A stretch of 45,761 nt of DNA, taken from the NCBI RefSeq assembly GCF_001194135.2, contig NC_068999.1, positions 25,871,810-25,917,570 of the forward strand, in the 5' to 3' direction. This DNA is from Octopus bimaculoides. Its lineage: Eukaryota. Position numbers and translations under genes: made by a program. The notes under the pieces were generated by a model. It saw nothing but the letters and a program-made list of their open reading frames with translations. It was not told where the DNA came from and ran no database searches. Below are positions 2,832 to 45,470 of the stretch, one piece after another (position 1 is the first letter of the stretch; every line of letters begins with the position of its first letter).

Positions 2832-3265
2832 GCAGGTGTAACTGTGTGATTAAGAAGTTTACTTCCCAACCATATGGTTCTGGGTTCAGTCCTGGTGTAC
2901 AACACCTTGGGAACGTCTTCTACTACAACCCTGAGCCAACCAAGGCCTTGTGAGTGGATTTAGTATATGGAAACTGAAAGAAGCCCTTATATATATGTGA
3001 GTGTGTGAATGTATATATGTTTGTATCTCTGTCTTGATACCATATGATAGTTGTAAACGATTGTCAATGTCACATAGACAGTGTCATTCATTTCCAATAT
3101 TCTGCAAAAACATGTCTGGCCAAGGGAGAACTATTACGTTGCTTGGAAATAGGTATAGGGTTGGCAATAGGATGGGCACCTGGCCATAGAAAACTTGCCT
3201 CAATAAATTCTCTCTGACTGTGCTAGCATGGAAAAGAGGATATTGAAATGACAATGACGATAATG
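2832..3265 (+). mobile_element. SINE family B (tRNA-like head, TA/TG linker, RTE-like 3' tail)
   Basis: Head gcaggtgtaactgtgtgattaagaag...ggttcagtcc...caccttggg...gtgagtggattt...gaaactgaaagaagccc, then a TA/TG linker, then a tail ending gctagcatggaaaagaggatattgaaatgacaatgacgataatga that resembles the RTE 3' end. Confidence 0.75.
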
Positions 3266-3436
3266 ATATAAAAACAATGAATTTCTGCATAGTTTTCTTG
3301 AATCAAATTTCAATCACAAGGTAATGTTGATCATGAGACTCTTGCCAGAAGTGCCATACAGTGAGAATGAACCTGAAACCACATTGTTGTGAATCAAAAT
3401 TCTTAACCACACAATCATGTCTTTTAAGGATACATG

Positions 3437-3474
<38 letters not shown>

Positions 3475-9997: not shown

Positions 9998-11640
9998 ATA
10001 TATATATTATTTGTTTTTACATGATCGAACGCCAGCCTCATCACTGTTGTAAGTAGTTATTTCAACTTTATATTTTCTGACGCGACTCTCTCTCTTTCTC
10101 TATCACTTTTTCCCCCTCTCGTTTTTCCTCTGTTACTACTACGTATCTCTCTTTACCCCTCTCGTTCTTCCTTCTGTTACTACTATATCTCTCTCTTTCC
10201 CCCCTCGTACTTCCTTCTGCTACTACTGTATTCCTCTCTTTCTCTCGTTGCTCACCTATTTTTCTACTTCCTCCCTTTGTTTCTCCCTCTACCACTCTCT
10301 CTCTCTCCCTTACCCCTGCATGGTCACATGCTTCCGGTCACTAATCCTTTTCTTCCTTGGCTACCGCTGAGCAAACATGAGAACTTACTTTGTCCCCACT
10401 TTCAAGTTCATGCCTCACAGCGTTCATATACACATAATTTTTCATGTCTGGCCGCATAGCCTTTTCCATTTGNNNNNNNNNNTAGGTATGCACATACCTG
10501 TACATATATATGCATATACTCATTTATTATTTGTTTTTACATGACCGAACGCCAGCGTCATCATTGTTGTAAGTGGTTATTTCAACTTTATATTTTCTGA
10601 CGCGACTCTATCTCTTTCTCTATCACTTTTTCCCCCTCTCGTTCTTCCTCTGTTACTACTACGTATCTCTCTTTACCCCTCTCATTCTTCCTTGTTACTA
10701 CTATATCTCTCTCTTTCCCCCCTCGTACTTCCTTCTGCTACTACTATATTCCTCTCTTCCTCTCTATCTCTCGTTGCTCACCTATTCTTCTACTTCCTCC
10801 CTTTGTTTCTCCCTCTACCACTCTCTCTCTCTCTCTCTCCCTTACCCCTGCATGGTCACATGCTTCCGGTCACTAATCCTTTTCTTCCTTGGCTATCGCC
10901 AAGCAAACACGCGNNNNNNNNNNNNNNNNNNNNNNNNNNNNNNNNNNNNNNNNNNNNNNNNNNNNNNNNNNNNNNNNNNNNNNNNNNNNNNNNNNNNNNN
11001 NNNNNNNNNNNNNNNNNNNNNNNNNNNNNNNNNNNNNNNNNNNNNNNNNNNNNNNNNNNNNNNNNNNNNNNNNNNNNNNNNNNNNNNNNNNNNNNNNNNN
11101 NNNNNNNNNNNNNNNNNNNNNNNNNNNNNNNNNNNNNNNNNNNNNNNNNNNNNNNNNNNNNNNNNNNNNNNNNNNNNNNNNNNNNNNNNNNNNNNNNNNN
11201 NNNNNNNNNNNNNNNNNNNNNNNNNNNNNNNNNNNNNNNNNNNNNNNNNNNNNNNNNNNNNNNNNNNNNNNNNNNNNNNNNNNNNNNNNNNNNNNNNNNN
11301 NNNNNNNNNNNNNNNNNNNNNNNNNNNNNNNNNNNNNNNNNNNNNNNNNNNNNNNNNNNNNNNNNNNNNNNNNNNNNNNNNNNNNNNNNNNNNNNNNNNN
11401 NNNNNNNNNNNNNNNNNNNNNNNNNNNNNNNNNNNNNNNNNNNNNNNNNNNNNNNNNNNNNNNNNNNNNNNNNNNNNNNNNNNNNTGTGGCTTGTGTGTT
11501 TTCTGTACTCTGGTTATTATTATTTTCTTGTCTACGTTTTGTTTGCAATGTCCTGTACCCAGATATGCACCTATATATACAGGTAGACGTAGGTATGCAC
11601 ATACCTGTACGTATATATGCATATACTCATTTATTATTTG

Positions 11641-11959: not shown

Positions 11960-12460
11960 ATTTAATGAAATCTCTAAATTTTTGTCTGTTTGCTAGGTCT
12001 TTGAGCTTCCATAATCTTCTTTTCCAGATTGGTTTATTTCTCTGAGTCTTTCTAGCTCTTATTCTGAAGTTACAAACCAGTAACTTTGGACAGCATCACC
12101 ATGGATTCCAGGGAGTGCATGGGAGCTATGGTTTTGGACCTAGAAATGAGGAGGGAACAAAACTGTTGGAGTTCTGTGATGCAAATGATCTCATGATCTG
12201 CAACACTAACTTCAAAAAACCAGCCAGCCACCTAATGACTTATCAGTCTAGTGATCACATAAACCAGATTGACTGCCTCCTCACCAGGCAACGAGATAGA
12301 TGGATGCTTGAAAATGCAAAGTCTTTCTCATGTGAAGAGTGTACAACCCAACGTAAGTTTCTAGTTAGTGACTTCAGAATTAGAGTTAGAAAGACTTGGA
12401 GAAATAAACTAATCTGGAAAAGAAGACTATGGAAGCTCAAAGACCCAGAAAATATCTATT
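11960..12460 (+). mobile_element. RTE LINE apurinic-endonuclease fragment preceded by an inverted partial copy
   Basis: ORF 12115-12477 (GYGFG.RNEEG..LLEFCDANDLMICNTNFKK...TY.S.....QID..L.R) is an APE domain. 11996-12085 is the reverse complement of ~12355-12445. Confidence 0.88.
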
Positions 12461-13214
12461 GCAAATATACAAATTAGGGATTTGTTTTAATTTAATCTAA
12501 TATTTTTATTTTGAAAATTAATATTAGGGGCAGACTATGAGCAAGATGGTTAGATAAAATCCATTGTCTCAGTTTGTAACATTTGGGAATGTAGCAGGAA
12601 GTTTCAATGACGGTTGCTTCTGATAGGCCCCTATGAAGGAAGTGCTGAGGACTCTACTTGTATGACCCTTTTCGAAACAGTAGCTAACAAAAATAAAAGG
12701 ATGGATGGGTGGACATGTATACATTTAACTTGTATTCATTCATCATGATTTTGAAGAAAGTAAAATTATATTTATTGTACTTAAGTAACGTTATGTAATA
12801 TAGGTTACAGTGGCTAAAATATATTTCCACCATTATGTCACAAACTGTTATGTGATTGGTAACAACCTCAGGTATAAATAAATACTTAGTTGCTTTGAAA
12901 ATAGAAGAAATATTATAATTCATTCTAAGATATTTTAAAATAAAAATAAATGTGAAATTGAACAGAATGAATGTTCCTAATTCTACTTCATGTTTGTTAA
13001 TGTTTATCTTTTCCCCACATTAGCATGGGTTAAGCAAATATATTAAAGCATTGTTTTATGTCCAGATGCACTTACTGTCACTAACCCTTATGTGCTTTCA
13101 AATAAGAAGTCTCTTATTCCATTTATCTTTGAATGTGTTGAGTCAGCAGATGATCTGTTGTCAAGAGAAAGAACACCAATAGAGAAGTGCAAATATAAAC
13201 ACACATACACATTT

Positions 13215-25154: not shown

Positions 25155-26716
25155 ATCATCATCATCATCATCGTTTAACGTCCACTTTCCATTCTAGCAT
25201 GGGTTGGATGATTTGACTGAAGACTGGCGAACCGGATGGCTGCACCAGGCTCCAATCTGATCTGGCAGAGTTTCTACAGCTGGAAGCCCTTCCTAACACC
25301 AACCACTCCGAGAGTGTGGTGGGTGCTTTTACATGCCACTGGCATGAGGGCCAGTGAGGCAGTACTGGCAACGACCTCATTCGAATGATTTCTAACATGC
25401 CACCAGCACAAGTGCCAGTAAGGCGACGCTGGTAATGATCACGCTCAAATGGTGCTATTTANNNNNNNNNNNNNNNNNNNNNNNNNNNNNNNNNNNNNNN
25501 NNNNNNNNNNNNNNNNNNNNNNNNNNNNNNNNNNNNNNNNNNNNNNNNNNNNNNNNNNNNNNNNNNNNNNNNNNNNNNNNNNNNNNNNNNNNNNNNNNNN
25601 NNNNNNNNNNNNNNNNNNNNNNNNNNNNNNNNNNNNNNNNNNNNNNNNNNNNNNNNNNNNNNNNNNNNNNNNNNNNNNNNNNNNNNNNNNNNNNNNNNNN
25701 NNNNNNNNNNNNNNNNNNNNNNNNNNNNNNNNNNNNNNNNNNNNNNNNNNNNNNNNNNNNNNNNNNNNNNNNNNNNNNNNNNNNNNNNNNNNNNNNNNNN
25801 NNNNNNNNNNNNTTTCGATTTCAATTTCACTTGCCTCAACAGGTCTTCGCAAGCAGAGTTTAGTGTCCAGTTAAGGAGAGGTTGGCATGGGTGCCAGTCA
25901 TCGAATTTGGTTCGATTTCGATTTCAATTTCACTTGCCTCAACAGGTCTTCGCAAGCAGAGTTTAGTGTCCAATGAAGTAAAGATACGAATAAGTGAGCT
26001 GGCTACACCCCTGACAGAGGCCACGGATTATGGTCTCACTTGGCTTGCCGGGTCTTCTCACACACTGCATATTTCCAAAGGTCTCGGTCAAAAGTCATTG
26101 CCTTGGTGAGGCCTAATGTTCGAAGGTTGTTCTTCACCACCTCATCCCAGGTCTCCCTGGGTCTGCATCTTTCATAGGTTCCCTCAATCGCTAGGGTGTA
26201 GCACTTTTTCACACAGCTATCCTCATCCATTCTTGCCACATGGCCATACCTGCGCAATCGTCTCTCTGGCACACCGCAACTGATGCTTCTTAGGTCCAAC
26301 TTTTCTCTCAAGGTACTTACACTCTGTCGAGTATGCACACTGACATTCCACATCCATCGAAGCATACTGGCTTCGTTTCTTGCAAGCTTACGCATGTCCT
26401 CAGCAGTCACGGTCTATGTTTCACTGCCATGTAGCATGGCTGTTTGTACACATGCGTCATACAGTCTGCCTTTTACTCTGAGAGGCCTTTTGTCACCAGC
26501 AGAGGTAAGAGCTCTCTGAACTTTGCCCAGGCTACTCTTATTCTAGCAGCTAGACTTTAAGCACACCCTCCCACACTACTAACTTGGTCACCTAGGTAAC
26601 GGAAGCTATCAACTACTTCTAGTTTTTCTCCCTGGAATGTGGCAAAGGTTGTTTTCTGCACATTTTCAGTGTTTATTGCTCCTGAGCATCTGCCACATGC
26701 AAAAACTATCTTGCTA
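25155..26716 (-). mobile_element. RTE LINE 3' fragment, relatively well preserved, interrupted by gaps
   Basis: IVFACGRCSGAIN...EKLEVVDSFRYLGDQVS (Cys motif plus YLG), ORF 26036-26410 (RRLRRYGHVARMDE...RPRETWDEVV), then 3' UTR and (cat)n tail at 25155. Confidence 0.92.
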
Positions 26717-27367
26717 NNNNNNNNNNNNNNNNNNNNNNNNNNNNNNNNNNNNNNNNNNNNNNNNNNNNNNNNNNNNNNNNNNNNNNNNNNNNNNNNNNNN
26801 NNNNNNNNNNNNNNNNNNNNNNNNNNNNNNNNNNNNNNNNNNNNNNNNNNNNNNNNNNNNNNNNNNNNNNNNNNNNNNNNNNNNNNNNNNNNNNNNNNNN
26901 NNNNNNNNNNNNNNNNNNNNNNNNNNNNNNNNNNNNNNNNNNNNNNNNNNNNNNNNNNNNNNNNNNNNNNNNNNNNNNNNNNNNNNNNNNNNNNNNNNNN
27001 NNNNNNNNNNNNNNNNNNNNNNNNNNNNNNNNNNNNNNNNNNNNNNNNNNNNNNNNNNNNNNNNNNNNNNNNNNNNNNNNNNNNNNNNNNNNNNNNNNNN
27101 NNNNNNNNNNNNNNNNNNNNNNNNNNNNNNNNNNNNNNNNNNNNNNNNNNNNNNNNNNNNNNNNNNNNNNNNNNNNNNNNNNNNNNNNNNNNNNNNNNNN
27201 NNNNNNNNNNNNNNNNNNNNNNNNNNNNNNNNNNNNNNNNNNNNNNNNNNNNNNNNNNNNNNNNNNNNNNNNNNNNNNNNNNNNNNNNNNNNNNNNNNNN
27301 NNNNNNNNNNNNNNNNNNNNNNNNNNNNNNNNNNNNNNNNNNNNNNNNNNNNNNNNNNNNNNNGAAA

Positions 27368-27407
<40 letters not shown>

Positions 27408-34819: not shown

Positions 34820-34992
34820 TAAGTAGTTGAATAAAAAGGGAGACATTACTATATAGATATATTATAGCAAAAGACAATACAGGCTACTGTACACAACATC
34901 ATTAGTAACAGCTGTAGTTCTTAGAAGCCATAGCTATGGTTAAATATAAACAAGATAAGATTTACATGAAATAAAGGAATATCAATTTGTGC

Positions 34993-37360
34993 TGCAAAAT
35001 TCCTGATGTGAAATCTTGTGTTCAAACCGATATTGTTGTATTTCGGGATGGTCATTTTTTTTTTTTTGCCAAATAAACACACGCATTATATATTTTTTCT
35101 TCGCTCTTTATTACTGTTCTTATTTTATTATTTTAACTCATGTCCATTGTCCGGGAATCTTTTGTCACACATCTGTGACCTCTTCAGCGACACTTTTCAT
35201 TTTCGTGTGTGTTCTTGCTCCACTTACTCCATTCTGTTCCTCTAAGGTATGTATCCTTATGTGTGTATGCCTTTGTGTGTGTGTGTGAGTGTGCATGTGT
35301 CATAGTTTTTAACAGCAGTGTGGCCTTCCCCTCCGCAGCCCCATCTTCTCACCCCATTGTGTTGCTGCTGTCCTAAGACCTGAAAATATGGTACAGTTCC
35401 TGTATTCCTCTGTGTATGTGTGTTCGCCCACGGTGGTACCATCGTGGTAGTTGTTATTACCATCAATGTCACCACCACTGCTGCTGTCGTTGTTAATCAT
35501 GTTGTGACATTGTGTGGCCATCCATGAAATTTCTTGTGTTTGTGTGTATGTATGGATTCACTTGGTATGTTGTATGTATCCATGCCCTTTATATAGATTT
35601 ATTTATTTATTTTATCTATCTCTATATCTAATATCTATCCCAGGTATGTGACAAATACATCTATCTCTATTTCTCGTAAGTATCACAGGTAAGTGCATAT
35701 GTGTCTATTGTGTGTGTTATCCTGTATTAATTACGGCTTTTTTTTCCTCTCTTCTGTCTTTAGTCATGTGGTGTGGTGTGGTGGTGGGTGTTACTGTTCC
35801 ATTCATGTTTTCTATTGAGGCTCAGTCTGTCTACTGCTATTTGTGTAGCCTCTGTGATCTGTCTAAGTGTTGTGTCAGTTCTATGTGTCAATAATACCTT
35901 AACCTCTATGCTATTAATCAAGCCTCCATGTTCTGCCTGAGCAGGTTAGCAGAGCACTGACAAGCTTTTCCCTTCTTTGAGCTTTTGCCAATGTTCACCT
36001 ATACACTCTCCTATGCTCACCGATGTAGGTAGTTGTCATATTTCTGCACCGTCCCTCAGTACATCATAAGCTATACACAACATTCCTAACCTTACAATTA
36101 ACTCATGGGTTCATCCTCCATACAGGGGTCTTATCAAAGGGATAGGTATTGCAGATCAGGGATTTTAATGGGACACCAGGCCTCTCTACTACTTTAATTC
36201 ATAGATTAGCCTTACTTAATGTTTTTCTAAACAGGTATGCTAGTTCCCCACCAGGGGTAGAGTCGATGAACATGACACTCTTGTATTTTTTGTTGTCATG
36301 CCAAGTGTTGGCCTTAGTTATCTTATTACTGGTCCTTTCTGTGTTGTTCCAGGATTCACTCCTGAACAGCAAACAGATCCCCTTAGCATCACTCTCTATG
36401 ATGGCTTTGTACTTAGTCCTGGCACCTTTGTACACTCTAATCCTGTCCCTTTGGTTGTAGCCAGAGAACTGTATGCAGTGGATGAAGTATTGTACGTGTC
36501 TTTCCAATTCCATAAGGTTGCACATGCGAGACACATTCATTACTCTCACCAAGTCAGCTATAAGAATGTTGAACTTGGCGTTGTCCACAACTGCTGCGTT
36601 CTTGCGAACCAGGTACTTAGAGGCCATGGGTTTGGCATAATGAGAGTGAAGGATCTGGACCTTACCGTTCTTCGTTTCTAGCCAGAATTCAGTATCTAAA
36701 ATGGGTAATCTATAGTTAGGGTGCTTACTAGGATAGTCTATCATTATTTCTATACTATTAGCTATTTGCTGGATGCTCTCCATAGTGTTAACTTCTGTAG
36801 ATCATCAACATTGTCTTGTATGGGTGCTTTGGTTACTATGTTGATATCATCCATGTAGCAAGAGTACATGATTAGGTTTATGGAGTTCTCTGAAAATTTC
36901 TCTTTAAGCCTCCTATCCCACCATACCATAAATATGTTAGCCACATTGCCAGCGATACTGACATTGATAGCTGCACCTTCCTCTTGGGTGTATATCGTAT
37001 TAAACTTAAATATATGACCCTTGAGTATGGTCTTGGTCCTCGCACCCACTGCATGTGCGACCATCTTTTTAACCTGATCTTTATTTTTGGGGTCTGTATA
37101 GCTCTGGTCCACCCATTCTATCTCTCTTTAGGGGTTTTCTAGGCCATAGAAGTTATAGTGGGAGGGGGGATCTATTTTTTATTGATCTAGTGGGGCAGAA
37201 ACAACTAAGGTCATGTTTATGTGACAATGACTATTTAGATAAACAATAGACATGAGTTAAAATAATAAAATAAGAACAGTAATAAACAAGTGAAGAAAAA
37301 ATATATAGTGTGTGTATTTATTTTGCAAAAAAGAAAAAAATGACCATTCCGAAATACAAA
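34993..37360 (-). mobile_element. Penelope-like retroelement (RT + C-terminal GIY-YIG), 5'-truncated, with inverted terminal repeat
   Basis: RT motifs QEEGAAINVSIAGNVANIFMVWWD and YMDD (36762-37112); thumb/linker LPILD, YAKPM, MFIDSTPGGELA (36199-36783); GIY-YIG NVVYSL*C...TYIGE...GEH...EH (~35900-36198). 35036-35185 and 37208-37360 are inverted repeats. Confidence 0.9.
35145..35196 (-). ncRNA. Degenerate type I hammerhead ribozyme in the PLE terminal repeat
   Basis: GTGTCG-CTGAAGA-G-GTCACA-GATG-TGTGAC-AAAA-GAT-TC-CCGGACAA. Core CUGAnGA and a perfect 6-bp stem II are present, GAAA is mutated to AAAA at a CpG, and stem I is imperfect. Confidence 0.65.
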
Positions 37361-37883
37361 AAAAGGGATCTCTGTTATCAATAAATAATCTGTGGAAGCA
37401 CATAACACACACAATTCATCTGCATGCAGCCACTCTATAAACTTATTCAGACAGCTGTGTGAATTTTAGAAGACCTTTGTGAAATAATCTGCAGACTCAA
37501 TGAGGAACATGTCTTCACTCAACTGTAAAATTCCTGTTCTTAGATTCTTTGAAACGAGAAAGAAAATATTCAATGTAATGTAATGCAGGCAGTTCAGGAA
37601 CCTTATTCTTTGGATGCCAATGCTCTTTGAGGGGGCAACTTGATAAATAGATAGATAGATATATGTGGAGAGAGAGAGAGAGAGGGGGTGGGGAGAGATT
37701 ATCCAGAATGGCCCCTAAGTATTTTCCATTTCTTCTATTGTTCATGTACACATGTGAAAGGAAGTGAGATAGAGAGAAAGAGAGTAGTGTACAAACAAAA
37801 GAAAAGAGCATTTGATACGTTTTGTAGAGTTTACATTTATTTGCAATAAATCACTAACTCAGAAGCAGACATCTGAACAACCG

Positions 37884-41753: not shown

Positions 41754-42270
41754 CTGCAAAGAAAATGAAGCCCATTATCTGTACCATTACTCTTTGGAGA
41801 CAATATCTCCATGCTGTATGGATATGTGCAAAAAGAATACCTTTAAAATTCATTATATAAAAACATATTGAATGTAATGAAAAAAAAAGGACTATAATAT
41901 AAACACACACACATAAAACCATGTACTAAATAATATTACGAAGTCAACACCCAACTGAGTATACACGAAGGTTTAGCCGTTTTCATTAAATGAGAAACAC
42001 TTTCGAATGATCGTTGACAAATAGAGAATAATATAAAAATTAAAATAAAAAACTTTCACAGGGATTGAGAGAGAATTAATATCAGCCCAAATAGTAAAAT
42101 TGGTTTAAAATGTTTTTGCTCATTGCTATATAATGCTATAGTTAACACTGAACGTCCACATACCTAATACAGTGAGCAAAATTTGTTTAATTAATCCATT
42201 TAGCCTTTGCGGAGTTTGATTAAGGGGAGGCAACTCAATTGATTAGAATTATTCCACTAAGGTGCTAAAC

Positions 42271-42638
42271 TTGATTTCAAATATTGGCACAAGACCAGCA
42301 ATTTCGAGGGAGGGATTTAGTCGATTACATCGATTCCAGTGTTCAAATGGTACTTATTTTATCGACTCTGAAAGAATGAAAGACAAAGTCGATCTCGTCA
42401 GGATTTTAACTCAAAACGTGATGACGCACAAAATATCGCTAAGCATTTTGCCTATCGTGCAAACAGTTCTGTCAGCTTGCCGCCTTAATGAATTGCTACT
42501 ATTAAACATGTGTAAATACCGCCATAATCTACTTTGCCTTTCATGCTTTCGAGATCGATAAAATAAGTACTGGGATCGATATAATCGGCTTAACCCCTTC
42601 CTCGAACTTACTGGCCTTGTTAAAAAAATTTGAAACCA
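42271..42638. mobile_element. Head-to-head pair of CpG-intact SINE family A copies
   Basis: Full minus copy at 42271-42487 and plus 3' half at ~42530-42638. Confidence 0.85.
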
Positions 42639-43592
42639 ACAAGTGTTGTATCCCTGGAAGTGAACTATTATAGGGGATACACTCCATTCTAGATTAAGTT
42701 AAGATGAAGCAGACTTAGACATTTGAAATTTTGAATCACTGTGTAAACTTATCTTTGGCAAGCATGATGTAGTCTTCAGTCATGTTTCAGTCTTATTAGA
42801 TGAACTCGGTAAACCATAGTCTTTTCTTTACTTATCAAACTAATAAGAGAATCAAAATTTGTGTATACTCATAAAGGTCAGTCTACAGCTGATAATTTCC
42901 TCTTCTCCATATGTAATTCCAATTTAAATTGAGATTTCGGAGTTACCTCCCCTATTACATTTAATTAATGAAACTGTTTCCCACTTTTCCTCACTTTTTT
43001 TCTTAACACCGAATTAATTACTATTTTTTTTTCAATCGGTAATTAATTACTTTTGTTTTTTCAATGCTCAGTTTTTTTTAAAAAAACTTGTAATTCTGAA
43101 GGTAAGGACTTATCCAGTTTTCTCATTTTGTTATTGGAAATATATTTATAAAAAAAAACTTTTTTACAACTTCAAGAATGCAATGTTGAATTTTAGATTC
43201 TCATTAAAAGAATTTAGATTTTTAATATCTCAGAACAGTAAAAGAATTAAAAATAAGTTTCCATAACTACTGTTGTATTAACACTTATGTTACTTAGTAT
43301 TTTGAATAATATTAAAAAAAAAAACGGATAATTATTAATAAATCATTGAATCATGGCAGAATAGTAACACAGCAAATTTCGTTGCAATACTACCACACAC
43401 GCACATGCCGATATAGGATAACTATGGGCAACTGTTTAGAAACCTCCAGCTTCTACACCCAAATTATAAATACGCATTTATACCAACAATAATTCGTGCA
43501 TTTAGTTTTGTGCAGTAATGTCCAAGTGACAATCTGGATAAGCTAAGGTTTTCAGAAAAAGAATACGAATTATTACGTTTATGTATTTGTTT

Positions 43593-43897
43593 TGCAACAT
43601 TCCTGTTGTGAAATCGTGTGTTGAAACATTATTATTATATTTGGGGATAGTCGTGTTTAATTTTTCCAATTAACCACACGCACTATATACTTGGTCTTCA
43701 CTTCAGCTTTAATATTCTTATTTTGGTGTTGTTTAATCAAGAGAATGGACGAAACAGAACAGGAGACACGTGGGATGGCGGGTTGTTGAAGAGGTCACAG
43801 GACGTGCGACGAAAGAATTAAATAAGAATAAGAATAAAGCTGTATAGTACGTGTGGTTAATTGGTAAAAAATATGACCATCATCAAATATAACAATA
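43593..43897. mobile_element. ORF-less inverted pair of the PLE terminal repeat, with hammerhead motif at 43780-43820 (+)
   Basis: 43593-43724 aligns to 34993-35133. 43741-43897 is the opposite orientation and contains TTGAAGA-G-GTCACA-GGACG-TGCGAC-GAAA. Confidence 0.7.
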
Positions 43898-45080: not shown

Positions 45081-45470
45081 TTACAAAATATTTTTAGGTT
45101 GAAAACGTAAGTTAGAAATGCATTCAATTAATTTTTCAAACAAATCACAATTTTCATACCTCCTGCGCCACATAAATTTACAGAGATATGAATCTATCAT
45201 AGAACGGTGAGTGCCACAGCGTCGTTTATTACCTTGCTTCACAGAGGCCCACGTACTCTCCACTTTCGGGTTAACAGACCCAATGCTGTGGTTCACCGTT
45301 CTATGCCCAAAATTGTAGCCATCAATTTCAGGAATGTGAGAGTACGCCCTCCACAAACCGTTGAAAATTGTGGTTCCTGGAAGAATCGAGTAGCGTATGC
45401 ATTCTTCCAGTGTGTCACGATTCCGACATGGCAGTGCGCACAGAAAAACCTGTCTGGTCTCGCGACACAC
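45081..45470 (-). mobile_element. Merlin (IS1016/ISXO2-like DDE) transposase C-terminal relic
   Basis: ILPGTTIFNGLWRAY...HRTVNHS...VESTWASVK...G....IDSYLCKFMWRR matches the IS1595/ISXO2 family pattern PGT.I.SD.W.AY...H.TVNHS...IES.W...YL.EF.WR. Catalytic residues are decayed. Confidence 0.85.

Follow-up and report, generated by a model that had tools for sequence, protein, structure and literature searches.

A decayed Penelope-like retrotransposon joined head-to-head to an inverted, tail-less copy of its own 3' end in the genome of Octopus bimaculoides

How does a retrotransposon come to carry, at its truncated 5' end, an inverted copy of its own 3' end, and what does it mean that this copy stops short of a stretch which the true 3' end retains? 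The question is raised by a locus in a 45,761-nucleotide stretch of the Octopus bimaculoides genome (RefSeq assembly GCF_001194135.2, contig NC_068999.1, positions 25,871,810 to 25,917,570 of the forward strand), which we call the window and whose positions are counted from its first letter. A first-pass annotation had described there a minus-strand reverse transcriptase (RT) gene of Penelope type, with a hammerhead ribozyme in its 3' repeat and an inverted, tail-less copy of that repeat at the other end. The observation was confirmed in each of its parts, with small shifts of coordinates. The locus holds a dead, 5'-truncated Penelope-like element (PLE), to which a short copy of the element's 3' end is attached head-to-head in inverted orientation. 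Taken as a whole, it is very probably one composite insertion of an endonuclease-bearing PLE, in which two 5'-truncated cDNAs were joined head-to-head with the element's 3' ends facing both flanks.

The anatomy of this first composite can be read directly. The long copy runs on the minus strand from 34985 to about 37204 and holds the last ~500 codons of the open reading frame (ORF), a 600-nt 3' untranslated region (UTR), a hammerhead remnant, what are putatively the opening codons of a following ORF unit, and a 46-nt tail, while the short copy (37207-37364, plus strand) is limited to the final ~158 nt of this 3' region and lacks the tail. A blastn comparison aligned 35033-35150 with 37362-37243 at 90.8% identity over 120 nt (E 8e-41), a repeat finder concurred, and the inverted repeat itself is far above chance expectation. 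With an nhmmer profile of the family and alignments, the inverted arm was followed over 37207-37364, where about 150 bp at 37208-37360 had first been proposed; it includes the further-decayed stem II that had been suspected in it, present as the helix II remnant GGUCAUGUUUAUGUGAC at 37209-37225, and an ATG at 37340-37342. The arm ends in ...GAAAUACAA(AAAAA), an A-run that leaves an ambiguity of ~5 nt (37359-37364). On the long copy, the 3' repeat common to the inverted arm, which is the equivalent of the pseudo-long terminal repeat (pLTR) of PLEs, occupies 35031-35185 on the minus strand (a 91% inverted repeat). The 3' UTR lies between the end of the endonuclease domain and the hammerhead (35193-35798, minus strand), its upstream border set by the end of the protein profile match at 35799; it is rich in (TG)n-type low-complexity sequence and gave microsatellite-like blastn matches at 35250-35300.

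The two 5'-truncated copies meet head-to-head at 37204-37206, between coding homology that extends to 37203 (the residues CFCPTR) and repeat homology that begins at ~37207. A MAFFT alignment in which 37195-37206 appeared as a homologue of the region upstream of the hammerhead was rejected, as this stretch codes for CFCPTR. The junction is not palindromic, having coding sequence on one side and hammerhead helix II on the other, and this bears on the possibility that the inverted arm was copied from a single cDNA (or an antisense template) after this had folded back. Arkhipova et al. (2013, PMC3846280) put forward such snap-back or self-priming for those PLE inverted repeats whose junctions are palindromic. 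Snap-back predicts a palindromic junction, however, whereas 37204-37207 joins two segments, CFCPTR coding and helix II, that lie ~2 kb apart on the template, and the junction of a second composite at 43.7 kb, described below, is likewise non-palindromic. Moreover, the inverted arm duplicates the 3' end, so that snap-back would still require a second initiation at the 3' start site. The non-palindromic junction therefore argues for excluding a snap-back origin, which we consider very unlikely. L1 twin priming is similar in that cDNA synthesis is primed by both target strands and the joined products are inverted relative to each other, but L1 inverts an internal segment of the same RNA without duplicating the 3' end, whereas both arms here start at the 3' initiation region; as it is the 3' end that is duplicated, and not an internal segment that is inverted, L1-type twin priming is excluded. 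What the junction does join are two different 5' truncation points, with both outer ends being 3' ends, and this fits two cDNAs that started from the 3' initiation region.

The long copy is identified by what is left of its ORF (35799-37203, minus strand), which was traced by tblastn with relatives and by hmmsearch with a profile and which, lacking its 5' part, runs from a CPTR motif through the RT, the thumb, and a linker to a GIY-YIG endonuclease (EN). A profile built from 11 relatives matched it in three reading frames over 37203-35799, with E-values of 5.6e-87, 1.6e-35, and 2.1e-16, of which the first two belong to the RT domain. Decay has introduced at least four frameshifts and at least seven in-frame stops. 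Still legible on the minus strand are the CPTR motif (37203-37165), the RT motifs GAAINVSIAGNVANIFMVWWD and YMDD (the latter at 36857-36846), which represent the RT4/RT5 core (YxDD), a VVY in place of GIY (36081-36073), and YIGE (36027-36016), after which comes EH...H...RQ..EA...LN. The decayed RT and GIY-YIG ORF proposed in the first-pass annotation is thus borne out by the profile matches and by the YMDD, VVY, and YIGE motifs. An alignment of the EN regions of 10 relatives with the window translation shows the blocks C-X(1-4)-C-xx-C, NC(K/R)S(R).VVY...C, C..Y.GET.R...ER..EH, H....H, and RQ..EA...LN, in which Y, C, Y-GET, H, H, and R are invariant and E and N near-invariant. At 33% identity to the relatives, the window EN has kept Y, YIGET, H, R, Q, E, and N. 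The EN region of a relative was modelled with AlphaFold2 as a beta-beta-alpha-alpha-beta-alpha fold (pLDDT 74.5), and the top three matches of this model in the PDB by Foldseek were all to the GIY-YIG catalytic domain of I-TevI (probability 0.98-0.99, target-normalised TM score 0.64-0.67). At the protein level, EN+ Penelope-like elements are defined by an RT with a C-terminal GIY-YIG (PMC8557442). By its RT and its C-terminal GIY-YIG with the CCHH pattern, the element is of this canonical EN+ type.

Only the long copy bears the tail, a 3'-terminal extension of 46 nt (34985-35030, minus strand; in RNA sense UCGGUUUGAACACAAGAUUUCACAUCAGGAAUUUUGCAGCACAAAU). The tail is homologous to 43585-43629 in the second composite and hence is part of the element rather than of its flank, and the same homology puts the true 3' end of the element at 34985, not 34993. 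The claim that the true end runs ~40 nt past the inverted copy therefore stands as to a one-sided tail but not as to its boundaries, which had been given as 34993-35035. The tails of the two composites (46 and 45 nt) are homologous to each other and missing from both inverted arms. Each may form a hairpin whose six-nucleotide loop is AC-rich (34996-35019, minus strand, and 43596-43619), predicted as CAAGAUUUC-ACAUCA-GGAAUUUUG in copy 1 (z -2.96); copy 2 has an ACAACA loop and a weaker z, with five of nine pairs kept and zero compensatory changes. This hairpin recalls the AC-rich stem-loop at the RT start site of PAc, a PLE of the Poseidon clade from the lizard Anolis carolinensis, a resemblance based on two sequences. 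Both the tailed and the tail-less ends are preceded by similar AC-rich strings, ACAACAAUA and CACAAAU.

An ATG is kept in three of the four arms of the two composites (35055-35053, 37340, and 43873). At 35055-35053 it opens MTIPKYNN..., in a frame that remains open through the tail of copy 1, which makes it the putative ORF start; the repeat would then hold the putative first 8 codons, or 24 with the tail. Counted from the A of this ATG, the proximal (tail-less) end lies at 25 nt and the distal (tailed) end at 71 nt. An AUG in the helix II loop (35172) was rejected as a start, since three stops separate it from MTIPKYNN, leaving the ATG at 35055 as the better candidate.

The second family member in the window was found by blastn, in which 43585-43724 matches 34985-35126 at 77% and 43897-43830 matches in inverted orientation. 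It is an ORF-less composite of 313 bp (43585-43897), made of two 5'-truncated copies that meet head-to-head at ~43737. Its left arm (43585-43737, minus strand; blastn 77%, nhmmer E 2.4e-26) is a copy of the 3' repeat with a 45-nt tail (43585-43629), and its right arm (43738-43897, plus strand; nhmmer E 2.5e-33) is an inverted, tail-less copy with a hammerhead core at 43786-43815. The end of the right arm, 43897, is the homologue of 35031 and, within the ~5-nt ambiguity of the A-run, of 37364. Both composites thus have exactly one tailed and one tail-less end, and their tail-less ends coincide; as a rule for the family, 'inverted means tail-less' is based on these two composites only. Five alignment columns pair the arms within composites and no column groups them otherwise, and the arms are 91% identical within pair 1 and 77% within pair 2, compared with 70-76% between pairs. 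Given these pair-specific variants and within-pair identities, the arms of each pair share one source, as expected for one event. The second composite strengthens the reading of the locus as a Penelope-like element whose tail marks alternative start points of reverse transcription, and with it the earlier proposal that the inverted, tail-less repeat is a footprint of where reverse transcription starts.

The second composite also helps in reading the hammerhead. Direct reading, a descriptor scan, and folding located a decayed type-I motif at 35148-35192 on the minus strand, with the 5' strand of helix I at 35192-35188, C3 at 35187, an extra G at 35180, helix II at 35179-35164, the G12 position, now A, at 35163, A15.1 at 35160, the putative cleavage-site C17 at 35154, and the 3' strand of helix I at 35153-35148. 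On the ORF strand, copy 1 (35192-35148) reads UGUCG-CUGAAGA-G-GUCACA-GAUG-UGUGAC-AAAA-G-AU-UC-C/C(G)GACA, and copy 2 (43781-43815) reads GGUUG-UUGAAGA-G-GUCACA-GGACG-UGCGAC-GAAA-G.... The hammerhead core first placed at 35145-35196 survives as this remnant, but its GAAA box reads AAAA and it has no Rfam match. Copy 2 has GAAA intact, with C3 changed to U and ~30 nt deleted after the core; its cleavage-site segment is missing. In copy 1, the inverted arm breaks off inside the motif and lacks the 5' half; in the helix II remnant that it keeps, direct reading indicates that both substitutions relative to the main copy preserve pairing by G-U. The defects are complementary, every invariant core position being canonical in at least one copy: the change of G12 to A in copy 1 is a CpG-to-CpA change where copy 2 still has CG, and the U at 16.1, which is C in copy 1, is kept in the inverted arm. 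Each copy carries a core substitution that is expected to abolish catalysis.

In the minimal hammerheads of PLEs, as characterised by Cervera & de la Pena (2014, PMC4209133), one base stands between A9 and 10.1, helix II is long and closed by G10.1-C11.1, and helices I and III are short. The motif shares with them the type-I topology, the base between A9 and 10.1, the G10.1-C11.1 closing pair, a 6-bp helix II, a 5-bp helix I with a bulge, and a 2-bp helix III with a palindromic 2-nt AU loop; the last feature would imply action as a dimer. It differs from them by the A at G12 and the C at 16.1 in copy 1, and by the U at C3 and the missing cleavage-site segment in copy 2. The motif was recognised by hand, and helices I and III were read from one copy only.

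The most likely account of these features is a mechanism modelled on the published biochemistry of PAc. A dimeric RT-EN would nick both target strands, and each of the 3'-OH ends would prime reverse transcription on a template RNA. Initiation could occur at either of two internal sites ~45 nt apart, after ...ACAACAAUA and after ...CACAAAU, use of the distal site giving a tailed end and use of the proximal site a tail-less one. Both cDNAs would end prematurely and then be joined in the middle.

Several results weigh against this account. The best candidate for a target-site duplication (TSD) is TATCAAT (34980/37376) for composite 1 and ATTTGT (43585/43905) for composite 2, and shuffled sequences did as well in 20% and 36% of trials, respectively (p ~0.2 and ~0.36); without a significant TSD, a single insertion event is unproven from the flanks. 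Pfam recognised in the window copy only RVT_1, below the cut-off (E 0.0025), and sequence searches of Pfam, NCBIfam, and the PDB (the last by phmmer) recognised neither the RT nor the EN of the relatives, while the Foldseek E-values for I-TevI are modest (0.03-0.14). No copies of the family were found outside the window in scans of metagenome DNA, in which the hammerhead core gave nothing and the ATGACCAT...AAYAATA segment gave four matches that are AT-rich, show no similarity beyond it, and are put down to chance. The mechanism is borrowed from a Poseidon-clade lizard element for an element that is apparently of Neptune/Nematis type. For the hammerhead, the Rfam models gave no match at E <=10 in 4.5 kb and in two 111-nt slices and none at the gathering score in the whole window; a relaxed descriptor is expected to match 0.53 times per randomised window, so the motif alone is not beyond chance; and minimum free energy folding gave no fold-energy signal (z -0.04 and -0.72).

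Could the element then be a PLE whose hammerhead is a chance look-alike, in a family as ribozyme-free as the Naiad PLEs? The Rfam result, the descriptor statistics, and the fold energies all favour this, as do an unrelated descriptor match at 42357-42401 in the same window and the failure of the descriptor to find a match in four contigs of relatives. Against it stand the recurrence of the same 30-nt core, in both composites and on the ORF strand, and the fact that no invariant position has been lost from all copies. In the extra base after A9 and in its long helix II, the motif also shows exactly the unusual traits of PLE minimal hammerheads, and helix II of the inverted arm still pairs despite its substitutions. 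A chance origin is on this evidence unlikely. We treat the hammerhead as a genuine but dead remnant that belonged to an active family, on the grounds of its position, strand, recurrence in both composites, and PLE-specific quirks, and not of motif statistics. The match at 42357-42401 was itself rejected as a chance match, lying in a repeat that resembles a short interspersed nuclear element (SINE), being closed by an A-U pair, and lacking both GAAA and a PLE context. This SINE-like repeat (42250-42560, minus strand) has a 10-bp hairpin, GAUCGACUUUG...CAGAGUCGAU, with CUGACGA before it and AAAA after it; ARAGORN found no tRNA in the window.

The weak TSDs also leave room for two independent events, in which a short 5'-truncated copy later targeted the 5' end of an older copy, and did so again at 43.7 kb. 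PLEs are reported to nick their own pLTRs and to form nested or tandem insertions (PMC11167929; PMC3846280), and there are no significant TSDs to frame a single event. Against this, the second copy would have had to land exactly at the end of the first one twice, in opposite orientation and with no flank between them, and the pair-specific variants common to the arms (five columns against none) speak for a shared source. We regard two events as improbable.

The composites might also be thought of as something other than products of reverse transcription, with the repeat being the terminal inverted repeat (TIR) of a DNA transposon, the unit at 43585-43897 a miniature inverted-repeat transposable element (MITE), and the PLE ORF merely caught between two ends. 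The 43.6-kb unit is indeed short and ORF-less, with inverted arms of ~70-100 nt. In both units, however, one terminus runs 45-46 nt past the inverted homology, and the two extensions are homologous to each other; the ends are thereby asymmetric, unlike TIRs. The first-pass annotation had itself named a TIR with TSDs and no link to the ORF as the case that would speak against its reading, and what the window offers is no significant TSD and, in copy 1, a repeat that is contiguous and co-oriented with the 3' UTR of the ORF. The arms also bear a strand-specific hammerhead and a conserved ATG. A DNA transposon is scarcely credible here, and a single composite PLE insertion remains by far the best explanation.

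To which PLE lineage does the element belong? Among 5.8 billion proteins, the nearest ones are 41-46% identical in amino acid sequence and come from ENA and JGI metagenome assemblies, including one Tara Oceans marine sample. All 10 relatives aligned over the EN have C-X(1-4)-C-xx-C between the RT and the EN, and CCHH inside the GIY-YIG. A CX2-5CxxC linker marks Neptune and Nematis and is missing in Penelope/Poseidon, according to the summary of Arkhipova 2006 in PMC8557442. With these two clades the relatives share the linker, CCHH, and a C-terminal EN, while the window copy is gapped where the Zn-finger is expected: at the linker it has stops and, in place of CX2-5CxxC, a gap whose length varies with the alignment (9-11 residues). 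The affinity of the element is therefore likely to be of Neptune/Nematis type, as judged from the linker of the relatives, with the decayed window copy not readable there and Neptune and Nematis not separated.

The contigs of four relatives (L001 to L004) contain no hammerhead by Rfam or by descriptor. In L004, the start-codon region of a full-length relative (230-275) reads AAUGAUGAGGAAUACCCGAAAC and has superficially the look of a hammerhead core over the ATG, as in PAc; the candidate, AUGAUGAGG...CGAAAC, was rejected on account of an A at C3 and a helix II of only 2 bp. In L002, an ENA contig, two tandem units of ~300 bp lie 3' of a related PLE ORF, each with a tRNA-like GCGTTTAGCTCAATTGG...GGTTCGAGTCCCACC (3100-3170 and 3395-3465), and may represent a SINE or a retrozyme-like tandem adjoining the PLE. 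In cephalopod genomes, PLE families are routinely annotated, with 31 in Octopus vulgaris and an expansion at a Jukes-Cantor (JC) distance of 0.2 (PMC13282606, PMC8967140).

How much of this arrangement is new? In Pen2a_Av of Adineta vaga, the pLTR is inverted and has a one-sided tail of 31 bp; it also contains the first 12 amino acids of the ORF, or 22 when the tail is counted (Arkhipova et al. 2013, PMC3846280). In the general scheme of PLEs drawn by Craig et al. (2021, PMC8557442, Fig. 2 legend), the inverted copy is 5'-truncated and the tail is often confined to one end. The octopus element agrees with both in its single RT and C-terminal GIY-YIG ORF, in the frequent 5' truncation, in the adjacent inverted terminal repeat, in the tail on one inverted repeat only, and in the hammerhead in the repeat. 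Its repeat likewise reaches into the first codons of the ORF, with putatively 8 (24 with the tail) compared with 12 (22) in Pen2a. It differs in being a dead copy, in its longer tail (45-46 nt compared with 30-40), in having no clear TSD, and in having no direct upstream pLTR, the last because the ORF copy is itself 5'-truncated.

Frangieh et al. (2024, PMC11167929) showed in vitro that the PAc protein cleaves both strands and extends them, and that it initiates at two adjacent internal RT start sites, the genomic tail being the sequence between these sites. By analogy, the octopus tail may be the stretch between two internal start sites, and cleavage and extension of both target strands would account for the outward-facing 3' ends. 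Both elements have the hammerhead close to the ORF start, either over it or a short way upstream, and the start sites lie in AC-rich surroundings early in the ORF. The distances differ: PAc starts 111-118 nt into the ORF (PMC11167929), compared with putatively 25 and 71 nt here, and its hammerhead overlaps the ATG, whereas here the putative ATG follows ~90 nt after the cleavage site and ~130 nt after C3. Penelope/Poseidon also lack the CX2-5CxxC linker that the relatives of the window element have. PAc is known from biochemistry, the present locus from sequence alone.

Every structural feature of the locus is thus already in the literature, having been described repeatedly since 2005-2013 and explained biochemically in 2024, and the finding is correct but ordinary. 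What is added here are the second composite, the corrected boundary of the tail, the likely Neptune/Nematis-type affinity, and a position-by-position account of hammerhead decay. The locus matters little in itself and opens no new question, but it illustrates the PLE insertion scheme cleanly in a natural setting, with 3' ends that face outward, a single tail, and a repeat that bears a hammerhead, and it modestly extends the in vitro Poseidon result of two internal cDNA start sites to a lineage whose relatives have the Neptune/Nematis-type linker. For curation, the 3' end of the family should be set at 34985 and not at the end of the inverted homology, a point at which repeat annotators often err.

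A stronger version of the mechanism is that the asymmetry is deterministic, one half of the RT-EN always using the distal site (tailed) and the other always the proximal site (tail-less), which we hold to be doubtful. If it were true, every double-primed insertion would carry exactly one tail, and the tail would record which subunit primed which target strand, so that the geometry and order of PLE integration could be read out in vivo for a Neptune/Nematis-type element.

Elsewhere in the window, N runs mark assembly gaps at ~1000-1250, 1940-2060, 10900-11500, 25460-25830, and 26700-27380, often beside microsatellites, and because the assembly is a gapped draft, repeats near the gaps may be collapsed. 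A 43-bp tandem repeat forms two arrays (10101-10242 and 10621-10765; 3.3 and 3.4 copies, 80-83% matches) that lie ~400 bp apart and adjoin an assembly gap. Two ORFs that by eye resemble pieces of retrotransposons of the long interspersed nuclear element (LINE) type had no Pfam match, one being endonuclease-like (12115-12477, plus strand) and the other like the C-terminal part of an RT (26036-26410, minus strand). Finally, a 129-amino-acid ORF at 45081-45470 (minus strand) gave a sub-threshold match to an ISXO2-like DDE transposase (PF12762, E 5.8e-4, 20.3 bits against a cut-off of 27).

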